IMG/VR virus record: IMGVR_UViG_3300023175_000005
Coordinates: 1-64,000 of that record
Length of the DNA: 64,000 bases
Strand: one strand, 5' to 3'
Part shown: positions 1 to 10,609 of the stretch, piece by piece
Layout: each line of letters begins with the position of its first letter
How positions within the stretch are numbered: the first letter of the stretch is position 1
The notes under the pieces: model-generated
What the model was told of the DNA's origin: nothing
Seen by the model: only the letters and a program-made list of their open reading frames with translations
Databases searched by the model: none
Made by a program: the position numbers and the translations under genes

Positions 1-11
1 AACGGCTTCGA

Positions 12-362
12 TTTCAATGGCTTACACGGTGATCCTCAGGTGGCCCCTGAGGGGCCTCACTGTGGTGTCACTTGTGAATCATCACATGAGGTTCACCTGC
101 TAACCGTTTGAATTTATTGAGAAAATCCTCTGCGGGGTCAGAAGGTTACTACCTTACTACTAGACTCTCTACTACTATAAGAGCGTCACCTAACCGTTTG
201 AAAACCGTGGAAAAAATCTCCCCTAGTACTACTACGCTACTATACACTTAACTACTATACTACTATAAGTTCAAGTTCATCCACTACTACACTATACACA
301 CAACTCATGTCTTTATAAGTCTTTGTTTCTAATGGATTCTTTTGGCCACTAAGTCATTGTTT
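12..362. promoter_or_regulatory. Cluster of five IHF-consensus-like sites
   Basis: TTTCAATGGCTTA 12-24; TAACCGTTTGAA 101-112 and 191-202; TAAGTCTTTGTTT 316-328; TAAGTCATTGTTT 350-362. Each is about one mismatch from WATCAANNNNTTR or its complement. Confidence 0.5.
146..300. repeat. CTACTA/CTACTATA low-complexity repeat tract
   Basis: Multiple CTACTACTATA / CTACACTATAC copies in a gene-free region. Confidence 0.7.
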
Positions 363-468
363 TTGTTGGATTCTTTTTTTCATTTTTATATAAAATAAAG
401 CTTGCGTATATGTGTAGTTGTGTTATATTAGTAGTATGTTAACAAAAATGCATATAGGAGGGCAACAT

Positions 469-783
469 ATGCTAAATGGACAAGTTTGTTTAACGGAAGC
501 AGTGCGTGTAGTACTAGTAGAAGAAGACGCACAATGGAAGGCGGAGTTTGAAAAATACGGCTACAACACAGACATGTGGGCAACATATGGGGAATTTGAC
601 GAGGAGTGGCGAGAAGACGTTTTTACAATAGACGTATTTGAAGACGAAACATATGGCTTTATATGCGGCAATGCTAGTGACAGGCGTGTATACGGATTTA
701 CAGTAGACGTGTACAAAGCAGAGGAAGCAGACGGCACGTATAGTTTTTGGATAACAAACGAAGACTACGCTACAATAGGATAA
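469..783 (+). CDS. Early acidic hypothetical protein (104 aa, no Pro)
   Basis: Own promoter; GGAGGGC RBS before ATG 469. Confidence 0.8.
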   Translation: MLNGQVCLTEAVRVVLVEEDAQWKAEFEKYGYNTDMWATYGEFDEEWREDVFTIDVFEDETYGFICGNASDRRVYGFTVDVYKAEEADGTYSFWITNEDYATIG

Positions 784-876
784 AAAAAAGTTTGCGCACA
801 GTGCATTTTTTGCTTGCATTGTGCGCAACTTGTGCTATAGTGTAACTACATTAACAACTGCACATAGTGAGGGCTT

Positions 877-1098
877 ATGCAAAAAAAACTTACACGCACA
901 CAAGTAAACGCAATTACACAAACGTTCCGCAATGCAACTACACTGCAACAACAACTGCACTACTTGCAAAACATGCAGTATAAAAATGGAAGCAGAGTGT
1001 ATGACGTAACGCATTGGGAGGAAGCTATTGAAAGTATTATAGAAGAATTGTGTGAGTGCATGGATGAAAGCGTGTTGCAACACTATAAAGTTTTTTAA
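877..1098 (+). CDS. Early hypothetical protein
   Basis: Promoter 814, RBS GAGGGC 869. Confidence 0.8.
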   Translation: MQKKLTRTQVNAITQTFRNATTLQQQLHYLQNMQYKNGSRVYDVTHWEEAIESIIEELCECMDESVLQHYKVF

Positions 1099-1182
1099 GC
1101 AAACGCAAAAAAAATGGTTGCACTGTAGCACAAGTTGTGCTATAGTGTAACTATAAACTAAACTAGCATAGAGAGGGCAATT

Positions 1183-1380
1183 ATGCAAAATGTTTTCGTT
1201 TTACAATTACAGGGCACAGGCGACAGTGAAACTGCTTGGGAAAATTTTGGCGTGTTTGCTACACAACAGGATTTAGAAAAACGCTTGCGAGAAATTAACA
1301 ACGACTATTTGGATACAGACTTACAGTTTTTTAGACTGTTTGACAATGCACGTATGGAAGTTTGGGAATTAAAAAAATAA
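1183..1380 (+). CDS. Early hypothetical protein
   Basis: Promoter 1118, RBS GAGGGC 1173. Confidence 0.8.
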   Translation: MQNVFVLQLQGTGDSETAWENFGVFATQQDLEKRLREINNDYLDTDLQFFRLFDNARMEVWELKK

Positions 1381-1451
1381 AAAAACACTTGACAAGCACT
1401 GTAGTACATGCTATAGTGCTTGTATAAACTAAACTAGCATAGGAGGGTTAT

Positions 1452-1799
1452 ATGCTAAAACTTACAAACAAATATGTTGAAATTGAACGTGACGAAGACT
1501 TGCAGGAGACTTGCACTATTACTGAGTATGCTGTGGAAGGCACAGTAAAACTTGCTATGGATAGCATTTGGAATTACACAGGCAGTGACACTGTGCGTGT
1601 GGATGGTATACAGATAAGAGAAACACTGTATGAAGAAGATGGTGATACTAGCATTATGGTGAACGTGGAGCATGATGCTGCATGGAACATATACACAGAC
1701 ACGGGCTTTGAACGTGCAATTAGTGAGGCGCTTGGTATGGATATTACATTTACAGAGCAAGGCATGCAAGACGACAACTATGCAAGCATGGAGGTGTAA
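1452..1799 (+). CDS. Early acidic hypothetical protein
   Basis: Promoter 1389, RBS GGAGGGT. Confidence 0.85.
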   Translation: MLKLTNKYVEIERDEDLQETCTITEYAVEGTVKLAMDSIWNYTGSDTVRVDGIQIRETLYEEDGDTSIMVNVEHDAAWNIYTDTGFERAISEALGMDITFTEQGMQDDNYASMEV

Positions 1800-1811
1800 T
1801 AACACACAGTA

Positions 1812-1878
1812 GAGGAAGTACTGCACTGTACAGTGTAGTACTTTCGTATACCTCGTCAGGCCCCGCTGTTGGGGTCCG
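1812..1878. repeat. Two inverted repeats (AAGTACTGCACTG-TA-CAGTGTAGTACTT; GGCCCC...GGGGTCC)
   Basis: Visible hairpins after the 1452-1799 gene. Confidence 0.6.
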
Positions 1879-1972
1879 GTTACCGGAAGTATTTTTTTTA
1901 AATTAGGGGTTGACAGGTGTGTGAGACTGTGTTATAGTATGTGTATAAGTTAACAAAACGCCGGAGGGCAAG

Positions 1973-2200
1973 ATGGCTACTGACTTACGTACAACAAACG
2001 AAGACTTTACAATGACACGCTTTTGGGCCGGCTTGGAGCAGAAGGTCCAGGTTACACAGCCGCGTGGTAACACTAACTTAGGCAAGTTGCAGCAAACGGA
2101 CGAGTTCTTTACCAGTTTGCAGTTAACACGAGACGAGGCACGTGCATTAGCATTAGACTTGTTTAAGTTTGCTGAAGGACAGGAAACAGAACAATTTTAA
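1973..2200 (+). CDS. Early hypothetical protein
   Basis: Promoter 1910, RBS GGAGGGC. Confidence 0.8.
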   Translation: MATDLRTTNEDFTMTRFWAGLEQKVQVTQPRGNTNLGKLQQTDEFFTSLQLTRDEARALALDLFKFAEGQETEQF

Positions 2201-2269
2201 CATTAGGGGTTGACAGCCCCTAATTATTATAGTATAGTGTATATACAGTAACGAACAACGAGGGATACA

Positions 2270-2611
2270 ATGTTTGTAATTTACGAAAACTCATCAACAC
2301 TTATCATGGGCAAGCCAGATCGCCACGGCATTGTTCGTCCAGATTATCGTCAGTCTTATAAGACTATGGCAGCGGCTAAGGCAGCCGTCACACGCATGGC
2401 CAAACTGTGGAGAGCCAACTCACTGTCAGTGTACGAGTCACGAGACAATGATCCTGTGTTCAGGTATGCGATAGCCGAGAAGTCACTGTTCCATAACTTA
2501 ATCGAAAAGCGGCGTGTTCGAAAGAACCTGATGAACGATTCAGAGTTCGTCGAACCGGTGAACACACCTGCACACATGTCACCTGCTTGCGAAACCTATT
2601 GGAGTATGTAA
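2270..2611 (+). CDS. Early hypothetical protein (C-terminal SPACETYWSM)
   Basis: Promoter 2210, RBS GAGGGA. Confidence 0.85.
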   Translation: MFVIYENSSTLIMGKPDRHGIVRPDYRQSYKTMAAAKAAVTRMAKLWRANSLSVYESRDNDPVFRYAIAEKSLFHNLIEKRRVRKNLMNDSEFVEPVNTPAHMSPACETYWSM

Positions 2612-2612
2612 G

Positions 2613-2792
2613 ATGAAAGATGTAGCATTGAACTTGGAAAAGCTAGACAACACTCTAGACACGGTAGAAGAACTCGTTCGGGGTCTTTCACTTCGGCCGC
2701 AAGATGAAAAGAGATTGACCGATCTAATCTACGACTTTTGGATGGATGTAGAAGAGTCGGTGGAACTGGCTCCTACAGATTTTCCAAATTAG
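2613..2792 (+). CDS. Small acidic protein, 59 aa (MKDVALNLEK...), below the ORF-track cutoff
   Basis: GGAG RBS; ATG immediately after the upstream stop; translated by hand. Confidence 0.7.
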   Translation: MKDVALNLEKLDNTLDTVEELVRGLSLRPQDEKRLTDLIYDFWMDVEESVELAPTDFPN

Positions 2793-2861
2793 GGGTTGAC
2801 ACAGTGCAGCCCCTATGCTATAGTGTATGTATAGTTAGAAACGTACAAACGGAGGGCTCCA

Positions 2862-3074
2862 ATGTACAACATGTTTACTGAAGAAGGCAACACAAAAGTT
2901 GCAGCACTTGTAGCACAAGCACGCCAATTTGCAGATGTAGACGGTCCTTACAATGCCACAGAACAGGCATGGAATTGGCTGCTAAACGAGTTGGATGCAC
3001 TAGCACGTAATCCTGCTTTTGAAGAAGCAACAGATACAGCAGTGCGTGAAGCCTGCTACGACCGTTTCATATAG
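2862..3074 (+). CDS. Early hypothetical protein
   Basis: Promoter 2796, RBS GGAGGGC. Confidence 0.8.
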   Translation: MYNMFTEEGNTKVAALVAQARQFADVDGPYNATEQAWNWLLNELDALARNPAFEEATDTAVREACYDRFI

Positions 3075-3083
3075 GAGGGCAAG

Positions 3084-3383
3084 ATGGACATTTCCGATCT
3101 TCTTCAAATCATCGCAGTGGTAGCAGCACTAGATGGAGTTCAATCTGACTCTAACCACAACGGAGGTTGGCACGGCGATCATGATAACCCGCAACACGAA
3201 AACGTTGTGATCAATCCTTGGCACGGCAACTCGAGCGGTTACCACGACGGCCAGCTTTATGCACCTGCCAGCCAGTGTGCTAGTGTACGTGAACAGGTAA
3301 CCGACCTAGGCGACCGCTGGAAGATCACCACCATCGAGACCTGCCACGACACCGTTCGAGCAACAAGGTATCAGTGGAAGTAA
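3084..3383 (+). CDS. Hypothetical protein, hydrophobic N-terminus, His/Gly/Asn-rich
   Basis: RBS GGAGGGC 3074-3080. Confidence 0.75.
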   Translation: MDISDLLQIIAVVAALDGVQSDSNHNGGWHGDHDNPQHENVVINPWHGNSSGYHDGQLYAPASQCASVREQVTDLGDRWKITTIETCHDTVRATRYQWK

Positions 3384-3398
3384 TCAAGACCCCCCTGC

Positions 3399-3455
3399 TA
3401 AGTCATTGAAAACAAAGAGAAAATTATTTTGCAAAAAAATGCTAAGTGCTTGTTT
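3399..3455. promoter_or_regulatory. Pair of IHF-like sites
   Basis: TAAGTCATTGAAA 3399-3411 and TAAGTGCTTGTTT 3443-3455; same motif as 316/350. Confidence 0.5.
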
Positions 3456-3544
3456 TTAAACAAAACAAAAAGCTTTACAAGTGCGTATACTTGTGCTATT
3501 GTGTATGTATAAGTTAACTAATATGTATACAGAGGAGCATTAGT

Positions 3545-3790
3545 ATGCAAAACAAAGTATTTTTAAACGCACAAAACGCTGCAATTGTTGTAACAGTAAA
3601 CAACAAAGTTGTTGCTACAGACGTACAAACTGCAGACGCACTTGTGCAAGTGTTTTTAACACATAACATTAATGTGCTAAAAGACAATATTATGTGTAGC
3701 AGCAGCATAGACTTTGCAAGTGAAGAGGGCTTTGCTAGTGACGCAAGTGCGCATAATATAATAGACGCTGCATTTGACACATTAGCATAG
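3545..3790 (+). CDS. Early hypothetical protein
   Basis: Promoter 3474, RBS GAGGAG. Confidence 0.8.
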   Translation: MQNKVFLNAQNAAIVVTVNNKVVATDVQTADALVQVFLTHNINVLKDNIMCSSSIDFASEEGFASDASAHNIIDAAFDTLA

Positions 3791-3810
3791 CACTGCTATA
3801 CTAAAGTATT

Positions 3811-3844
3811 GCAAGCACTATACATAATAGTGCTTGCTTTTTTT
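3811..3844 (+). terminator. Intrinsic terminator overlapping the next -35
   Basis: GCAAGCACTAT-ACATA-ATAGTGCTTGC followed by a T-run. Confidence 0.7.
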
Positions 3845-3899
3845 GTTTTTTGTGTTATATTAATTGTATAACTTTAACAAGCATATAGGAGGGCTTTAT

Positions 3900-4067
3900 A
3901 TGCAAAAACAATATACACTAGAAGACTTTACTAATTTGGAGTACTACAACAAAATGCGCTGTGCAGACGGAGACGTTGTACAGTACATTGCAAAACGTAA
4001 ACGTGCTAAAACACACTGCCTAATTACTGTAAAAAATAACGTAGTACTAAAAGTGCAAAAATATTAA
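3900..4067 (+). CDS. Early basic hypothetical protein (55 aa)
   Basis: Promoter 3834, RBS GGAGGGC, ATG 3900. Confidence 0.75.
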   Translation: MQKQYTLEDFTNLEYYNKMRCADGDVVQYIAKRKRAKTHCLITVKNNVVLKVQKY

Positions 4068-4139
4068 AAAAACACTTGACAAGTGCTATAGTGTGTGCTA
4101 TAGTGCTTGTATAACGTAACAGCATATGGAGGGCTTTAT

Positions 4140-4409
4140 ATGCAAAATACTACTACTAAAACAGCACGTCAAATTGTGCGCAACATCTTAAAGCAAAACA
4201 ATGTTATGTATTCTCCGCACAGTTACACAAACAAATGTGCAAATCCTGCACTGCGTAACATTTGCTTCCTCACTAAAAACTTAACTCCTACAGTAGTGCA
4301 GCAAATTGCTTCTGCGCTTAATGTTAGCAAAGTACATGCTACCAAGCCTATGTTTTACAATGTGCATCCGGATGCACGTTATTTGCGTATAGTACATTGC
4401 GCAAAATAA
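4140..4409 (+). CDS. Early basic hypothetical protein (no Glu/Gly/Trp)
   Basis: Promoter 4076, RBS GGAGGGC, ATG 4140. Confidence 0.75.
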   Translation: MQNTTTKTARQIVRNILKQNNVMYSPHSYTNKCANPALRNICFLTKNLTPTVVQQIASALNVSKVHATKPMFYNVHPDARYLRIVHCAK

Positions 4410-4495
4410 TTTAAAAAAATGCAAATTAGGGGTTGACAAACGGCTCCTAGTTTGCTATACTATATGTATAGTTAGACGCAACGGAGGGCAATCCA

Positions 4496-4693
4496 ATGGC
4501 AGCAATCAAAATTTTTAACTCAGCATACCGTGACTCAGAAGAGCGTTGGTTGGAAATGGACGAAGTGAATGTAGTCACTATGAAGATGGACTACGACAAT
4601 GTTCCTTACATTTTGTTTGAGCACCGTGACTTTCCACTAGGCGCACTGAGCGCAACATTCACAGACGGCAACTGGTACTGTGATTTAAATTAG
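4496..4693 (+). CDS. Early hypothetical protein
   Basis: Promoter 4433, RBS GGAGGGC. Confidence 0.8.
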   Translation: MAAIKIFNSAYRDSEERWLEMDEVNVVTMKMDYDNVPYILFEHRDFPLGALSATFTDGNWYCDLN

Positions 4694-4759
4694 GGGTTGA
4701 CAGCATCTACAGAGATGCTATTATATAAACATAACGAAACAAAGCCATAGGAGGGTAAC

Positions 4760-5236
4760 ATGGCAACTCGTGCAAGAATTGGAATCGAAAACGCAGACGG
4801 TTCAATCACAACTTCATATCATCACTGGGACGGCTACCCAGCAGGCTTGGGTTTCAACCTAGTCAACAACTGGGCAGACGAAGACTTGCTTGGTGAGGCT
4901 ATCGCACTTGGTGACGCATCACATTGGGCAGACACTATTGGTTCAAAGACAGACTTTGACTGCCGTGACGATAACTATTACAAACAGAATGTCTACTACG
5001 GACGTGACCGTGGCGAGACAGGCGTAGATCCAATCATCTATGATACCTATGCTGTGTTTGAGAAATGCTTCCTACGCAACACACCTTGTGGTGAAGAGTA
5101 TGCTTATGTCTTGCGCTTGGACGGCACTTGGACACAGATTTCAGTATACCACAAAGAGGTCAAGCACGATGCGGAGGATTCAATCCGCACTGCCAAGGCT
5201 CAAATGCAACGATTGATTGATCAGGAGGCAGCATAA
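4760..5236 (+). CDS. Conserved phage early protein (MATRARIG...YHHWDGYP family)
   Basis: Recognisable Y-x-H-W-D-G-Y-P motif; promoter and RBS. Confidence 0.85.
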   Translation: MATRARIGIENADGSITTSYHHWDGYPAGLGFNLVNNWADEDLLGEAIALGDASHWADTIGSKTDFDCRDDNYYKQNVYYGRDRGETGVDPIIYDTYAVFEKCFLRNTPCGEEYAYVLRLDGTWTQISVYHKEVKHDAEDSIRTAKAQMQRLIDQEAA

Positions 5237-5742
5237 TGCCCAATTGGTGCAACAATTCATTCTCAATCACTGGTAACACTGAAAGCATCAAAGACCTTTG
5301 GGAGGCAGCACAGACTGCCGGCCCAGACGGTGGCTTTGGTTTGCTCAATGCAATCGCTCCTATCGGTGACTGGGAGTATGGTAAGGCTGTAGACACTTGG
5401 GGAACCAAGTGGGATGTCACTGACGAAGGTCTAGAGTTCATCGACAATGGTGACGGCACTGCTAGTATCTCAGGTTGGTTTGACTCAGCATGGTCTCCAC
5501 CTATTGGTGCTTACGAACAGTTGGCAGCGGACTTCGACTCGTGTATAATCGAGTGCTCCTACTACGAACCCGGTATGGACTTTGGTGGCTTTTGGTCTAG
5601 TGAGAACGGCGACGAAGAGTTTGACAATCTACAAGAGCGCTTAGAGCAGCCTACAGAAGAATGGGACGAGCGTTTCACAGCGTTCGAAGTAGAATACGAT
5701 CTACTGTCAGAAGAATGGCGTTTTGAAGAGGAGGAAGCGTGA
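5236..5742 (+). CDS. DUF1281/YubB-like ferredoxin-fold protein
   Basis: MPNWCNN, WGTKWD, FDSAWSPP, YYEPGMDFGG motifs. Confidence 0.8.
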   Translation: MPNWCNNSFSITGNTESIKDLWEAAQTAGPDGGFGLLNAIAPIGDWEYGKAVDTWGTKWDVTDEGLEFIDNGDGTASISGWFDSAWSPPIGAYEQLAADFDSCIIECSYYEPGMDFGGFWSSENGDEEFDNLQERLEQPTEEWDERFTAFEVEYDLLSEEWRFEEEEA

Positions 5743-5981
5743 AGATGTATATTGAAGGTTTAACAGAGGAGCAATGTGAAATGCTCGACAAGCTTTGGTC
5801 AATGGATACGGTAGAAGAAGTCAACGAGTTTCGCAACACTCTTCCTCGTTTCCGCCAACAGCAGATCGATACACTGATGGAATTGGTTATCCATGAGATG
5901 AAAGAAAAAGAACTGTCTCTAATGGAACGCTATCCCGAAGCAGAAGAAATGCTAGAAAGATTGAAAAAAGATTTCCTTTAG
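5739..5981 (+). CDS. Hypothetical protein
   Basis: GTG start coupled to the upstream stop; GGAGG RBS. Confidence 0.75.
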   Translation: MKMYIEGLTEEQCEMLDKLWSMDTVEEVNEFRNTLPRFRQQQIDTLMELVIHEMKEKELSLMERYPEAEEMLERLKKDFL

Positions 5982-6043
5982 GGGTTGACACTGCTGCTGT
6001 AGATGCTATAGTGTATGTATAAGTTGAAACGAGGGCAGTTACA

Positions 6044-6193
6044 ATGACAAAAGAAAACACAGGCGAAGCATTTGGTTACTTCCTAATTGTATTATTTGCA
6101 CTAGGATGGATGGATGTGCTTTGGGTATTTGGAATTGAAAACAGCAAGGACTACACATGGTGGAACTTGATACAGTATTTGGGGAATCTCTAG
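6044..6193 (+). CDS. Small membrane protein, 49 aa
   Basis: Promoter 5985, RBS GAGGGC 6031; hydrophobic ORF translated by hand. Confidence 0.7.
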   Translation: MTKENTGEAFGYFLIVLFALGWMDVLWVFGIENSKDYTWWNLIQYLGNL

Positions 6194-6195
6194 GT

Positions 6196-6348
6196 ATGAA
6201 CGATCTAATCGAAATTGTAGAAGACTTGGAATCAATCGAACTGCACGGTGTAGATAGCACTGCGTTCGAAGCAATCATTGAGAAATGGGAACAGCGTAAG
6301 ACAGAAGCCGAAGAGTTTTTGGAACGTCAATTCGAGATGGAGGTATAA
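6196..6348 (+). CDS. Small acidic protein (MNDLIEIVED...)
   Basis: ATG directly after the upstream stop. Confidence 0.65.
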   Translation: MNDLIEIVEDLESIELHGVDSTAFEAIIEKWEQRKTEAEEFLERQFEMEV

Positions 6349-6350
6349 AC

Positions 6351-6510
6351 GGAACAAGGCAATATTGAGTGGTGGTCAAACCCCTGGTTCTAAAGTTCCA
6401 AAAATGACGTAAAGAGATATATTGCCTGTGGTAGCCTGCGCCACGTTAGAAAATAAGATTGGGCTTAGAGGGTCTGTAGCCTGGCGCAGACGATAAACTT
6501 CGCCCAGGTA
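6351..6510 (+). ncRNA. Candidate structured RNA upstream of the tRNAs
   Basis: Stems AGGCAATAT/ATATTGCCT, GTGG/CCAC, TGGGC/GCCCA, GTCTG/CAGAC; no sense ORF. Confidence 0.4.
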
Positions 6511-6513
6511 CTA

Positions 6514-6600
6514 GCCTCCATGGTGGAATAGGTAGACACAAGAGACTTAAAATCTCTCGCTGATTACAGCGTCCCAGTTCGAGTCTGGGTGGAGGCACCA
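6514..6600 (+). tRNA. tRNA-Leu (TAA)
   Basis: Acceptor GCCTCCA/TGGAGGC, anticodon arm AGAGA-CTTAAAA-TCTCT, long variable arm, GTTCGAGTC T-loop, encoded CCA. Confidence 0.97.
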
Positions 6601-6613
6601 ATCTTTTTTTGAC

Positions 6614-6690
6614 GGTTGCGTAGCTCAACTGGATAGAGCAACAGACTTCTAATCTGTAGGTTGAGGGTTCGAGTCCTTCCGCAATCGCCA
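6614..6690 (+). tRNA. tRNA-Arg (TCT)
   Basis: Acceptor GGTTGCG/CGCAATC, anticodon arm ACAGA-CTTCTAA-TCTGT, GTTCGAGTC T-loop, encoded CCA. Confidence 0.97.
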
Positions 6691-6774
6691 AAAAAAGATT
6701 AAAAAAGTGGTTGACAATATATCTACTGATGCTATTGTATATGTATAGGGCAACTAAACAACGAGGGCTTAGAA

Positions 6775-7089
6775 ATGTTCGTAGTTAAGACACAGATTTT
6801 AGAAAACTATGGTGCACACAGCGAAGACGGCCGTTTTGCCTCAGGCAATGCGTACTGGAAGATGAAAGGCGGCAACGAGTATATCGTTCGTGACCTTGAT
6901 CGTCCGCAGGATGCTATGGCGTTCGTGGCTGCCAAGTTCATCGAGAACAACATCGCATTCAAGGAGTTTCCAATTGAGGTAATCACTTGGGAAGAATGGC
7001 AAGCGGAACTTAACGATCTCGACGAAGACTATCGCGAGTTCCTAGTAGAGCAGGCTATTGCTTGCTCACCCGTAGCGGAGGCAGCGTAA
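6775..7089 (+). CDS. Conserved phage early protein (TQILENYGAH...YWKMKGG)
   Basis: Promoter 6711, RBS GAGGGC. Confidence 0.85.
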   Translation: MFVVKTQILENYGAHSEDGRFASGNAYWKMKGGNEYIVRDLDRPQDAMAFVAAKFIENNIAFKEFPIEVITWEEWQAELNDLDEDYREFLVEQAIACSPVAEAA

Positions 7090-7241
7090 TGGAGCAGAGC
7101 GTAATCACAGTCACCATCGTGCTAGCCACACTGCTAGCCGTTGGACTGTTCATTAACGTAGTTCAGTTCGTATCCCGTCCGTGGGTACTGGTATTACTGT
7201 TCGGAGTGCTTGGCTGGTTTTTATTCGCCAGTACACTTTAG
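7089..7241 (+). CDS. Small two-helix membrane protein, 50 aa
   Basis: TAATG coupling, GGAGG RBS, hydrophobic; translated by hand. Confidence 0.7.
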   Translation: MEQSVITVTIVLATLLAVGLFINVVQFVSRPWVLVLLFGVLGWFLFASTL

Positions 7242-7302
7242 AGGTTGACAAATGCATTTTAGAACGTATACTGATAACAATTGTAAAACACATGAGGGCA
7301 AC

Positions 7303-8298
7303 ATGAATATAGAAATTATCGATGGCGAATACAATATCAAAGGGAAACCAACACCTATGAACGGTTTGATGTTTCCTCTAGTCGAAGAGTTTAAAATTGG
7401 GACGGGGGGCGGCTATGTCACGGTTGACGCTAGACCAGTCGCTGGCTTGCCGGATCGTAACATTAAGATCCGAGTTGCCAATGCAGACGCCTACAAGAAA
7501 GCAGGTGAGTCTACAGTCGCCCCCCAGGCAGAGACCGATGAACAGACCATTGAACGGTTGCGTGAACGGTTCCTAATGCTAGAGGACATGACCAAAGCAG
7601 TCAAGAAAGGCGATGTACGTGCAATGATCGTATCAGGACCTCCAGGTGTCGGTAAGAGTCACGGTATCGAACAAGTACTAGATCGATACAAGACCATGGA
7701 GGCACTTGGCGGTGAGAAGAAGTACGAAGTAGTCAAAGGCGCAATGAGTCCGATCGGCTTGTACTGTAAACTCTACAAGAATTCAGCCAAAGGCAACGTT
7801 ATTGTGTTCGACGACTGCGACTCAGTATTCAACGACGAACTATCGCTGAACATCCTAAAGGCTGCTCTGGATTCAAAGAAGACCAGAACAATCCATTGGA
7901 ACACTGATTCGTTCAAATTGCGCAACGAAGGTGTGCCAGATCAGTTCAAGTTCGAAGCCAGTGCGATCTTTGTTACTAACCTTAAGTTCGACAAAGCCAA
8001 GGGCAAGATCCGTGAGCACTTGCAGGCACTAGAGAGTCGCTGCCACTACATGGATTTGACTATCGATACCGATAGAGAAAAGATGCTCAGAATTCAGCAG
8101 ATCGTCGGTGACGGCATGCTAAATGATTATAAGTTTGCGAAAGAGGTAGTCGCAGATATTGTCGACTTCGTAGACATTAATAAAAATAGACTGAGAGAAC
8201 TGTCACTACGTACAGTGCTCAAAGTCGCAGACCTAGCCAAAGCTTTCCCTACTCGTTGGGAAGCAATGGCAGAGAATACTGTGATGAGACGTGGTTAG
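7303..8298 (+). CDS. AAA+ P-loop ATPase
   Basis: Walker A GPPGVGKS, Walker B VIVFDDCD, ALESRC; RBS GAGGGC gives ATG 7303. Confidence 0.9.
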   Translation: MNIEIIDGEYNIKGKPTPMNGLMFPLVEEFKIGTGGGYVTVDARPVAGLPDRNIKIRVANADAYKKAGESTVAPQAETDEQTIERLRERFLMLEDMTKAVKKGDVRAMIVSGPPGVGKSHGIEQVLDRYKTMEALGGEKKYEVVKGAMSPIGLYCKLYKNSAKGNVIVFDDCDSVFNDELSLNILKAALDSKKTRTIHWNTDSFKLRNEGVPDQFKFEASAIFVTNLKFDKAKGKIREHLQALESRCHYMDLTIDTDREKMLRIQQIVGDGMLNDYKFAKEVVADIVDFVDINKNRLRELSLRTVLKVADLAKAFPTRWEAMAENTVMRRG

Positions 8299-8390
8299 CC
8301 CTCAGCCTTTCCTCTCACAGTTGGTGTAGCAGCGTTGCCCTCACGCTCTGCACATTAGCGCTCGCAGGACCGCCCTCATCCTGCGGGCGC
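8279..8390 (+). ncRNA. Triple-hairpin RNA with GCCCUC loops (candidate anti-RBS sRNA)
   Basis: Hairpins 8279-8320, 8324-8353 and 8358-8390; GCCCTC in the loops at 8298, 8337 and 8372. Confidence 0.65.
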
Positions 8391-8464
8391 ATTCATTTTA
8401 AATTTTCGGTTGACACAAGTTTGATTGATGCTATTATAAATGTATAGCAAGAGAGGGCAATCAA

Positions 8465-8833
8465 ATGCTTATTACAAAAGACACCGACGCACAAGCAGCA
8501 CAGCCAAGTTGGATTGTGCTAGAAGACATTGCACGCCGTGCAGCACATGCCTACAACACACACCAAGAGTTGTTTGACAGTGCAGAGCACCAAGAACGTG
8601 TAGCACAAGCAAAAGAAATTTGTCGTGCGTACTTTGCAGGCTGGAGTGCAATATACGAAACAGCACGCCAACAAACAAGCCGCCGTGCAGCACACACTGA
8701 ACTCAAGTTCAATCGAGTTGTACTGCGCAAAACACGCAACAGAGATCGTTGGCTAGAAAGCCTACGTGCAATTGGCATTGACGAAGTTGTCTACAAGCCG
8801 GCAACAGAAAGTTACAGCCTACACATTAGGTAA
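8465..8833 (+). CDS. Early hypothetical protein
   Basis: Promoter 8410, RBS GAGGGC. Confidence 0.85.
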   Translation: MLITKDTDAQAAQPSWIVLEDIARRAAHAYNTHQELFDSAEHQERVAQAKEICRAYFAGWSAIYETARQQTSRRAAHTELKFNRVVLRKTRNRDRWLESLRAIGIDEVVYKPATESYSLHIR

Positions 8834-8844
8834 GGAGTTACTGT

Positions 8845-9051
8845 ATGACTTGGGAAGTTAGAGCACAAAGAAGCACAAGAGAAGCCTGCGTCAACAGTGA
8901 AGAGTTGGGCTGGAGCAGTGTTTTTGTTGATACACAAGCGGAAGCGGAAGCATGGTTCGAGTGCAGAACTAGAGGCAGAAGATTGGAAAGAAGTGTTCAT
9001 GTCTTGTTCGATCCCACAGGTGCTGTTCAAAGAGTTGCATTTTGTGGTTGA
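8845..9051 (+). CDS. Hypothetical protein
   Basis: AAGGAG RBS. Confidence 0.7.
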   Translation: MTWEVRAQRSTREACVNSEELGWSSVFVDTQAEAEAWFECRTRGRRLERSVHVLFDPTGAVQRVAFCG

Positions 9052-9112
9052 CACGGGTTGCCCTGTGTGCTATATTATAAACATAGGGCAACAGCAAAAG
9101 AGGGTTTTGCAA

Positions 9113-9271
9113 ATGGACTACAGAGACTTCGCAATTGAACTAGTAGAAGATATGGGCTACGATGCCAAAGACATGTTGATTGCTGCGCTTAAATATATGT
9201 CGCAAGACGATGTAGAAGACATGCTATACATCAACGAATATCCACTTGCACCGTGTGAGGAGGCAGCGTAA
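9113..9271 (+). CDS. Small acidic phage protein (ALKYMSQDDVEDML)
   Basis: Promoter 9048 and RBS GAGGGT give ATG 9113. Confidence 0.8.
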   Translation: MDYRDFAIELVEDMGYDAKDMLIAALKYMSQDDVEDMLYINEYPLAPCEEAA

Positions 9272-9465
9272 TGGGCTATCGCATTCTAAACATTGATCCG
9301 GAATTCCGTGCTAAGTTTGAAGAACGCAAAGGACTGGAAGGTCCGTTCTTCTACGATGGCAACGATGTGTTGTATTATGATCCTCGTGAAGGTGCTTACC
9401 TAGATCCCCGCACAGATCAATATCTAACCTACACAGAATATCAGGAGCGCACATGTACTACGTAA
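9271..9465 (+). CDS. Small phage protein (GLEGPF...LYYDPREGAY)
   Basis: TAATG coupling, GGAGG RBS. Confidence 0.8.
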   Translation: MGYRILNIDPEFRAKFEERKGLEGPFFYDGNDVLYYDPREGAYLDPRTDQYLTYTEYQERTCTT

Positions 9466-9572
9466 TGGAACCCGACGGCACTGTTTTTGCTATATGTTCA
9501 CGACTCAAAGACGCAGAAGCAATGTGTCATCGAGTAGGAAAAGAATCAAAAAAATACATCAAAAAAGGTTGA
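9453..9572 (+). CDS. Small hypothetical protein, 39 aa
   Basis: AGGAG RBS; translated by hand. Confidence 0.55.
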   Translation: MYYVMEPDGTVFAICSRLKDAEAMCHRVGKESKKYIKKG

Positions 9573-9628
9573 CAACACATCTAGTGATGTTAATATAAAT
9601 GTATAGGGCAACAACACAAGAGGGTGTT

Positions 9629-9901
9629 ATGAAAAATCTAAAACAATACGTTGAACAGCAGAACTCATGGAATGCAATCTTTGGTCAGTCACCACTGCCA
9701 ATGCCACTGAGTCAAGCAGGTGTTAACTCAATTGCAAACTCAATTGACGCAGGCTTGTCACCAGAGAACTTGCACTGCGATGGAGAGATTTCAGCAACAG
9801 AAGCACGTAAGAAATACAATCGCTATCACCAAGTGCTGAAAGAACTGCGTGAATACGCACGTAAGAACTCAATGACCTTACCAGAGATGTGGTGCGCATA
9901 A
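9629..9901 (+). CDS. Conserved phage early protein (LSPENLHCDGE)
   Basis: Promoter 9569, RBS GAGGGT. Confidence 0.85.
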   Translation: MKNLKQYVEQQNSWNAIFGQSPLPMPLSQAGVNSIANSIDAGLSPENLHCDGEISATEARKKYNRYHQVLKELREYARKNSMTLPEMWCA

Positions 9902-10122
9902 TGGAAAACTATGAAGCAATCTATCGCTTGGAAGCAATCCAAGAACAGTTAAACGAACTAGGCAACGAAGCAGCCGAGATCTTCCGCGAGCACTTCCCTA
10001 GGCAATATCAAACAGGAGATGCATACGGTGCATTTTCATTCGGCTCTAGCTGGAACTCATATAACACTACACTGGAGACACTGATTGAAAGTGCTCGCAA
10101 TCAAGAGGAGGAGTTGGCATGA
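9901..10122 (+). CDS. Hypothetical protein
   Basis: TAATG coupling. Confidence 0.75.
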   Translation: MENYEAIYRLEAIQEQLNELGNEAAEIFREHFPRQYQTGDAYGAFSFGSSWNSYNTTLETLIESARNQEEELA

Positions 10123-10264
10123 AGCTGCATCTAATCAATCTTGCAAGTTCAGCAATGAGTGCAGCCGTAATCCTGGGCACGATCTTTTTGGCAGTAATTG
10201 GTTGACACTATCTCTAGAGATGTTAATATAAGATATAGAAACAATAGCAAGAGGGTAACACGCT

Positions 10265-10609
10265 ATGAACTACACTGTAACAGAACTTAAAGCAATCCTA
10301 ACAGAAGCACAAGAAGCAGCATACACTGCGGCTGACGCTTTTGAAAAGAAATACTTTCCGGACAACGGCTGGGGAGCATGTGGCTTTGCTTGGGTAGACA
10401 TTTGGGGCATTAAAGGCAACACCAAACTAGGTCGTGCTATGAAGGCAGCAGGCATAGAGAAAGACTACAAAGGTGCACACTCTATTTGGAACCCCAGCAA
10501 GTATCCTACACAGAACATAGACACGCTAGAAGCAGGTGCACGAGCAGCCGCTGATGTGTTTAAGCGTTACGGCTTTGACCGAGCATACGCAGGATCTAGA
10601 CTAGACTAA
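10265..10609 (+). CDS. Conserved phage early protein (GACGFAWV...SRLD)
   Basis: Promoter 10202, RBS GAGGGT. Confidence 0.85.
   Translation: MNYTVTELKAILTEAQEAAYTAADAFEKKYFPDNGWGACGFAWVDIWGIKGNTKLGRAMKAAGIEKDYKGAHSIWNPSKYPTQNIDTLEAGARAAADVFKRYGFDRAYAGSRLD

Follow-up and report, generated by a model that had tools for sequence, protein, structure and literature searches.

A conserved cluster of hairpins with GCCCUC loops downstream of an ATPase gene in an uncultured marine jumbo phage, probably an RNA controlling translation of early genes headed by the complementary GAGGGC motif

The window analysed here, a stretch of 64 kb, is the first part of a 256.6-kb IMG/VR contig, and belongs to a jumbo myovirus, since it encodes helicases, large terminase and tail sheath proteins. 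Bases 1 to about 10,600 form a + strand block which holds small ORFs without Pfam matches, two tRNA genes at 6514-6690 and about 16 near-consensus sigma-70-type promoters, as is typical of an early region read by the host polymerase. The G+C of this block is 0.40-0.455, against 0.29-0.41 for the rest of the window. An AAA-type ATPase gene (phrog_1250, function unknown), which shows only weak AAA Pfam matches, all below the curated cut-offs, lies in this block behind its own promoter (TTGACA, 16 nt, TATACT), and three hairpins follow at its 3' end. The features of the locus were as follows.

458..463 (+), GAGGGC leader site before ATG 469
869..874 (+), GAGGGC leader site before ATG 877
1173..1178 (+), GAGGGC leader site before ATG 1183
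1443..1448 (+), GAGGGT leader site before ATG 1452
1964..1969 (+), GAGGGC leader site before ATG 1973
2852..2857 (+), GAGGGC leader site before ATG 2862
3075..3080 (+), GAGGGC leader site before ATG 3084
3889..3894 (+), GAGGGC leader site before ATG 3900
4129..4134 (+), GAGGGC leader site before ATG 4140
4484..4489 (+), GAGGGC leader site before ATG 4496
4751..4756 (+), GAGGGT leader site before ATG 4760
6031..6036 (+), GAGGGC leader site before ATG 6044
6747..6753 (+), second, upstream AGGGCAA site in the leader of gene 6775
6763..6768 (+), GAGGGC leader site before ATG 6775
7245..7272 (+), sigma-70-type promoter of the ATPase transcription unit
7293..7302 (+), ATPase leader site TGAGGGCAAC, complementary to loop 2 and its flanks
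7303..8298 (+), AAA-type ATPase gene, stop codon TAG at 8296-8298; its last codons form the 5' arm of hairpin 1
8279..8320 (+), hairpin 1; loop 8297-8303 shows A-GCCCUC, with the stop codon at the loop edge
8324..8353 (+), hairpin 2; loop 8336-8342 shows U-GCCCUC; its 3' arm ACGCUCUGC (8343-8351) is conserved in sequence across relatives
8358..8390 (+), hairpin 3, with a 12-bp GC-rich stem; loop 8370-8378 shows CC-GCCCUC-A; probable terminator stem
8391..8406 (+), T-rich tail after hairpin 3, probable 3' end of the transcript
8410..8437 (+), promoter of the next early gene
8453..8458 (+), GAGGGC leader site before ATG 8465
9085..9091 (+), upstream AGGGCAA site in a leader whose ribosome-site copy is GAGGGT
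9100..9105 (+), GAGGGT leader site before ATG 9113
9605..9611 (+), upstream AGGGCAA site in a leader whose ribosome-site copy is GAGGGT
9620..9625 (+), GAGGGT leader site before ATG 9629
10251..10256 (+), GAGGGT leader site before ATG 10265

The initial annotation had described three consecutive hairpins at the ATPase stop codon whose loops all carry the reverse complement of a motif preceding 13 early start codons, and this observation was confirmed in every detail. Folding of 8279-8400 with RNAfold gave exactly the three hairpins listed above, and each base of the loop motifs was unpaired with a probability of 0.68-1.0. The region 8270-8410 folded at -55.2 kcal/mol (z = -5.5 against 200 dinucleotide shuffles, none of which folded as well). 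On the + strand GCCCTC occurred only three times in the 64 kb, each time in one of these loops, while GAGGGC occurred 14 times, all within 458-8458, and 13 of these precede an ATG by 2-7 nt; the remaining one, at 3725, is internal. Both orientations together gave 17 sites against 7.9 expected, and 1 of 100 shuffles reached 17. Five more early starts use GAGGGT, which brings the complementary leaders in the window to 18. Internal genes of operons and the genes of the rest of the window use other sites, namely GGAGGC junctions, AGGA and AGGAG. Neither motif was found in the late region, where 2.9-6.1 were expected, but this avoidance is only marginal.

A search of IMG/VR with the ATPase gave 77 related loci with 65-79% identical ATPases, and nearly all of them carry GCCCTC hairpins directly after the stop codon. 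Among these loci 66 have distinct ATPase 3' regions, which hold 174 GCCCUC motifs, 135 of them in loops of the minimum-energy fold. Of the distinct regions, 63 carry one to five motifs (one in 3 loci, two in 24, three in 26, four in 8 and five in 2), and the array ends a median 129 nt after the stop. The last motif hairpin is followed by a T run in 42 of these 63 relatives, and the next promoter lies within 250 nt in 60 of 63. In the window, hairpin 3 has a GC-rich stem, but its tail is ATTCATTTTAAATTTT and its loop is 9 nt, so it was not listed by a simple terminator scan; relatives often have a clean T run. No promoter-like site was found on the + strand between 7272 and 8410, so that the element, like a 3'-UTR-derived sRNA, has no promoter of its own and probably shares the terminator of the parent mRNA. 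In many relatives the stop codon lies in or at the edge of the loop of hairpin 1, as it does here. In one relative (L018) a GIY-YIG-like gene has been inserted after the stop, and a duplicated remnant of the ATPase end still forms hairpin 1 in front of the array. Three MAG contigs from NCBI also carry the locus, but they are assigned to unrelated phyla and thus say nothing about the host.

The loop hexamer is invariant over 168 distinct copies, and a contiguous stem of at least 5 bp encloses it in 69% of them, against 22-23% at control positions. To test whether the stems covary, 40 distinct hairpins were chosen by loop sequence only (the string GUGCCCUCG), and their flanks aligned without gaps. 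In this set 79% of cells were paired against 53.6% in shuffles, and the covariation score was 0.62 against 0.20; none of 500 shuffles reached it, and slid registers gave 0.10-0.19. Three pairs next to the loop each use three to five standard pair types. The second pair is U.G in 38 of 40 hairpins, which would be C.A on the complementary strand, so the structure belongs to + strand RNA. A whole-element alignment with MAFFT and RNAalifold recovered only the outer stems, because the modules vary in number and length.

No known RNA family or closely related sequenced phage accounted for the element. An Rfam search of the window returned only tRNAs at the gathering score and nothing relevant at E up to 10 in 8200-8470, and it returned nothing for the element in 8 ingroup relatives or anywhere in 4 sister-clade loci. 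No DNA match was found in the GenBank phage collection, and the ATPase homologues there are at most 45% identical and lack the element. PA5oct and two Vibrio phages also lack it. A 15-mer scan of IMG/VR found the clustered motif only next to the ATPase, and the other hits were single chance matches inside unrelated genes.

In the relatives 598 distinct AGGGC..ATG leaders were found. Their consensus is an A-rich leader followed by (G/A)AGGGC-A-A, then 3-7 nt and the ATG, and 75% of them lie 15-30 nt after a sigma-70-type -10 box, against 20-27% for AGGAG or AAGGA sites. An unbiased count across relatives gave GCCCTC as the most enriched hexamer after the ATPase stop (176-fold) and GAGGGC as the most enriched upstream of start codons (31-fold), and these two are exact reverse complements. 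Furthermore, the base after AGGGC in leaders (A.71, T.20, G.08, C.02) mirrors the base before GCCCUC in loops (U.58, A.28, C.14, G 0), whereas no complementarity exists on the other side. The common seed is therefore about UGCCCU(C) with (G)AGGGCA, a short one of 6-7 nt, rather than a longer genome-tuned duplex. Duplexes calculated with the whole 122-nt RNA were long and meaningless, and loop-only duplexes were used instead; their median energy was -14.7 kcal/mol for early starts and -6.75 kcal/mol for other starts.

The link between the two motifs was then examined across clades. A sister clade (38 loci, ATPase 47-57% identical) has no such hairpins, and AGGGC lies before 0.1% of starts there, against 26% in the ingroup. 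However, this joint presence and absence is a single evolutionary event, and the seed never changes within the ingroup. Leaders whose ribosome-site copy is the degenerate AGGG[T/A/G] carry an extra upstream AGGGC, usually UAGGGCAA, in 31% of cases against 6.8% (odds ratio 6.2, P = 5e-7). The window has three such upstream sites, at 6747, 9085 and 9605, of which the last two lie in GAGGGT-led leaders. This shows that AGGGC is selected as an element in its own right and not only as a Shine-Dalgarno sequence.

Other comparisons did not strengthen the link. The flanks of the seed show no genome-specific co-evolution (own-genome match 7.14 nt against 7.12 nt across genomes), and the number of loops does not track the share of AGGGC leaders (rho 0.12). 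Two lineages, L004 and L266, keep the hairpin array although most promoters sampled there belong to a second class with a palindromic spacer and a GAGGAGCA leader; AGGGC- or AGGG-type leaders persist there on the ordinary promoters. Several conserved features are not explained by pairing with leaders: the G-C and U.G closing pairs of one hairpin class, the ACGCUCUGC 3' flank of the middle hairpin, and the strict linkage to the ATPase stop codon. For the flank, no conserved complementary site was found, and a 9-nt match at 7094 is unique to this window.

These facts suggest that the 3' end of the ATPase mRNA is most likely a conserved, modular, multivalent anti-Shine-Dalgarno RNA, acting either as the 3' UTR or as a fragment of about 110-130 nt cut from it. 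In this view it consists of 2-5 adjacent hairpins, three in the window, the last of which may double as the transcription terminator, and each displays (U)GCCCU(C) in its loop for pairing with (G)AGGGC(A), the Shine-Dalgarno region of the short, A-rich leaders made from the many sigma-70-type early promoters of this phage clade. Pairing would cover the ribosome-binding site, and the RNA, made from an early promoter and probably long-lived because it is highly structured, would shut down translation of the promoter-proximal early genes as it accumulates. Genes with AGGA/AGGAG-type sites and internal genes with GGAGGC junctions would be spared. Since one promoter feeds the RNA while about 16 feed its targets, the stoichiometry of this model needs a stable RNA. 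Several points fit a base-pairing seed, namely that a linear motif is displayed in loops of many sizes and contexts, that it is exactly complementary to a position-specific leader motif, and that the two are inherited together. Our analysis establishes the structure, its strand and its conservation, the complementarity, the position of both motifs and their joint presence or absence across clades, whereas it is inferred from sequence alone that the two RNAs meet, that translation of the targets is controlled through the seed, that the outcome is repression (inferred from the position of the pairing), and that a separate, stable small RNA is released. We put the probability of this reading at about 0.5.

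The interpretation given in the initial annotation, in which a 3'-UTR-derived multivalent sRNA silences the early regulon through a phage-specific ribosome-site address, spares AGGAG-led and leaderless middle and late mRNAs and feeds back on the ATPase gene, was thus supported in part. Sequence comparison supports the conserved, strand-specific structured RNA, the complementarity of its loops to a promoter-proximal leader motif, the joint occurrence of both across clades and the use of AGGA/AGGAG-type sites by other genes of the window, while the discrete sRNA, the silencing and its timing remain inferences. The feedback on the ATPase gene was not supported. It had been based on a 10/10 match between 8334-8343 and the ATPase leader at 7293-7302, which are indeed exact reverse complements, but across 55 relatives the ATPase's own leader matches its own loops no better than other leaders do (mean 5.9 against 7.0 nt), and 10 of the 55 ATPase leaders lack AGGGC.

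Among the alternatives, the one that survives best, although it is unlikely, is that the loops are binding sites for a protein, either a phage or host RNA-binding protein or the ATPase itself, which would control stability, processing or termination of this transcript; the match to the leader motif would then be incidental, or the protein would read both. This model is kept alive by the conserved features which leader pairing does not explain, such as the hexaloop UGCCCU closed by G-C and then U.G in 38-40 of 40 hairpins, the ACGCUCUGC flank, and the fact that the element never separates from the ATPase gene. Moreover, in the cuckoo system the upstream protein CcaF1 binds the RNA (PMC8034643). 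However, the hexamer is shown in loops of 6 to about 19 nt, with different closing pairs and at different places in the loop, which fits a linear seed better than one structured protein site. The model also does not explain why the exact complement is the top motif before early start codons, why both appear and vanish together, or why degenerate leaders gain a second AGGGC, and no RNA-binding domain was found in the 20 early ORFs examined.

It is somewhat less likely still that the same pairing takes place with a positive outcome, the RNA protecting early leaders from nucleases or helping their translation. The pairing evidence applies equally to this reading, and the RNA would be made early, together with its presumed targets. 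However, the pairing sits on the Shine-Dalgarno region itself, 3-7 nt from the ATG, which blocks initiation in known cases (PMC4615179), and the short A-rich leaders hold no structure that needs opening.

A mere terminator and 3' exonuclease barrier, with a loop sequence shared through repeated duplication of one hairpin, is improbable. The T runs and following promoters in relatives agree with it, and the hairpin units look like paralogues, but the stems have diverged and covary while the loop hexamer is invariant, other terminators in the early region lack the motif, and a barrier needs no loop sequence. A purely cis-acting element, in which the 3' UTR controls the ATPase alone by pairing with its own leader, was rejected because the 10/10 match seen in this window is not conserved, and because several loops per RNA and hundreds of matching leaders point to action in trans. 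A DNA-level role as a cruciform, origin or recombination site, suggested only by the clustering of inverted repeats between two transcription units, is very improbable in view of the conserved U.G pair and of a strictly strand-specific motif inside a transcript bounded by a promoter and a T run.

Phage temporal programmes are explained almost entirely by proteins, such as RNA polymerase modifiers, sigma factors, nucleases and translational repressors, and known phage sRNAs mostly act on host genes or on single targets. Literature searches for the motif or for a phage anti-SD sRNA found nothing relevant, and on these searches no regulator of this kind has been described in a phage early regulon. 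Here a whole class of early genes in a very abundant uncultured marine phage clade carries a conserved address, together with a conserved RNA apparently built to read it; the ATPase family has at least 8000 members at E below 1e-30. A further-reaching reading, which we regard as tentative, is that these phages mark their promoter-proximal early mRNAs with a private extension of the Shine-Dalgarno sequence (AGGGC), and that the early phase of infection is closed, or otherwise coordinated, by an RNA rather than by proteins, as an RNA-based temporal switch acting on a whole gene class. If confirmed, it would show that the bacterial multi-hairpin anti-SD design has been taken up, or reinvented, by viruses, would give a simple sequence rule for calling early genes in these metagenomic genomes, and would offer a compact, orthogonal pair of leader tag and RNA for translational control.

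The closest known architecture is that of the cuckoo/CcsR RNAs (alpha-r14, RSs0680) of alphaproteobacteria, an established class of sRNA which is made from a 3' UTR in Rhodobacter (PMC4615179, PMC8034643). These RNAs have 2-4 adjacent hairpins of similar size, each loop carrying one identical C-rich anti-SD-like motif, with highly variable stems that show compensatory changes and a varying number of modules. The phage element shares the adjacent hairpins and the compensatory stem changes around a conserved loop motif, and, as expected of a trans-acting anti-SD sRNA, it has a seed that is predicted to be accessible and is complementary to the ribosome-binding sites of several mRNAs. However, it is not a member of that family, because its loop motif is GCCCUC and not CCUCCUCCC, it is encoded by a phage and not by a chromosome, its upstream gene encodes an AAA-type ATPase and not a DUF1127 protein (as in the CIN1 subgroup), and it has no Rfam match. 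In addition, its presumed targets carry a private extension of the ribosome site confined to one temporal gene class.

In S. aureus RNAIII and RsaE-type sRNAs, C-rich UCCC motifs exposed in several hairpin loops pair with ribosome-binding sites. Several loops can bind one target (PMC4615179), and the two AGGGC sites of some leaders here could allow similar two-point contacts, but those sRNAs have a different motif and are host-encoded, independent genes. Some resemblance also exists to tRNA-linked regulatory or stable RNAs (E. coli 3'ETS-leuZ; T4 stable RNAs C and D), since in about half of the relatives that have a tRNA cluster a further GCCCUC-loop hairpin directly follows the last tRNA gene, although the window itself has no such hairpin after its tRNAs. 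The 3' UTR of S. aureus icaR mRNA likewise carries a C-rich motif complementary to a Shine-Dalgarno region, but icaR acts on its own mRNA, whereas the own-leader match is not conserved here. In function, the element would parallel the T4 RegB endoribonuclease and RegA repressor, by which a phage singles out early mRNAs through their ribosome-binding region to end early expression, RegB cutting GGAG in early Shine-Dalgarno sequences (PMC1702504, PMC3014915); those agents are proteins, whereas the agent proposed here is an RNA and the recognition is by base pairing.

In addition to the array after the ATPase gene, a second home of the same loop word was found. In about half of the relatives that have a tRNA cluster, the last tRNA gene is followed at once by a long hairpin with a GCCCUC loop, often with a T run after it, as in the following places and others (numbers with the prefix L denote the related loci):
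L006, 7785-7860, hairpin with a GCCCUC loop after the last tRNA gene
L009, 1924-1990, the same
L007, 8318-8400, the same
L013, 9847-9920, the same
L047, 4282-4360, the same
However, there is no such hairpin after the tRNAs of the window (6690-6710). A small hairpin (ACACGGG-UUG-CCCUGUGU) at 9051-9068 of the window, which lies inside the spacer of the promoter at 9048-9076, also contains UUGCCCU, but in the stem rather than in a loop. The early block (1-10600) has a G+C content of 0.40-0.455, against 0.29-0.41 elsewhere, and the 53-kb remainder (10700-64000) contains neither GAGGGC nor GCCCTC on either strand (expected 2.9-6.1).

Within the array itself, the 3' arm of the middle hairpin, ACGCUCUGC (8343-8351 in the window and the same place in relatives), is conserved in sequence even where its 5' partner changes. 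Since no complementary target was found in any locus, this arm may be a protein or nuclease site. In the lineage comprising L044, L198 and L199, the array after the ATPase is reduced to two hairpins, one of them with GCCCCUC, and most early leaders are longer, start with a small hairpin (GUGAGCGAACAGCUC..) and use AGGAGA. In the sister clade (in L229, L247, L252, L253 and L245), a different conserved, structured-looking sequence (..GCAGUGUGCGUAAGGGCAAUGUCAAUAAGUCCCUU..) lies between the ATPase and the next gene, in the first 80 nt after the ATPase stop, and it has no Rfam match.

Other types of start site and promoter were also observed. Three overlapping stop-start junctions in the window share the string GGAGGCAGC(A/G)TAATG, and the upstream ORFs therefore all end in -E-A-A:
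5222-5238, stop-start junction
7075-7091, stop-start junction
9257-9273, stop-start junction
This is a second conserved type of ribosome-binding site, which is used for internal genes. In two of the related lineages, L004 (1721-12625) and L266 (65-4242), a second class of early promoters has a palindromic spacer (TTGACA-CTAGCGC..GCGCTAG-TGT), which looks like an operator, and these promoters are always followed by a GAGGAGCA leader. These facts suggest that there are two separately regulated early classes in these lineages.

In L018, a 201-aa ORF with a GIY-YIG-like N-terminus (2189-2794, - strand) is inserted between the ATPase stop and the hairpin array, and a duplicated remnant of the ATPase 3' end lies at 2810-2860. 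The arrangement looks like a homing endonuclease insertion. In L067, a glutamine riboswitch aptamer (RF01739, 38.1 bits, gathering score 35) occurs at 9946-9996.
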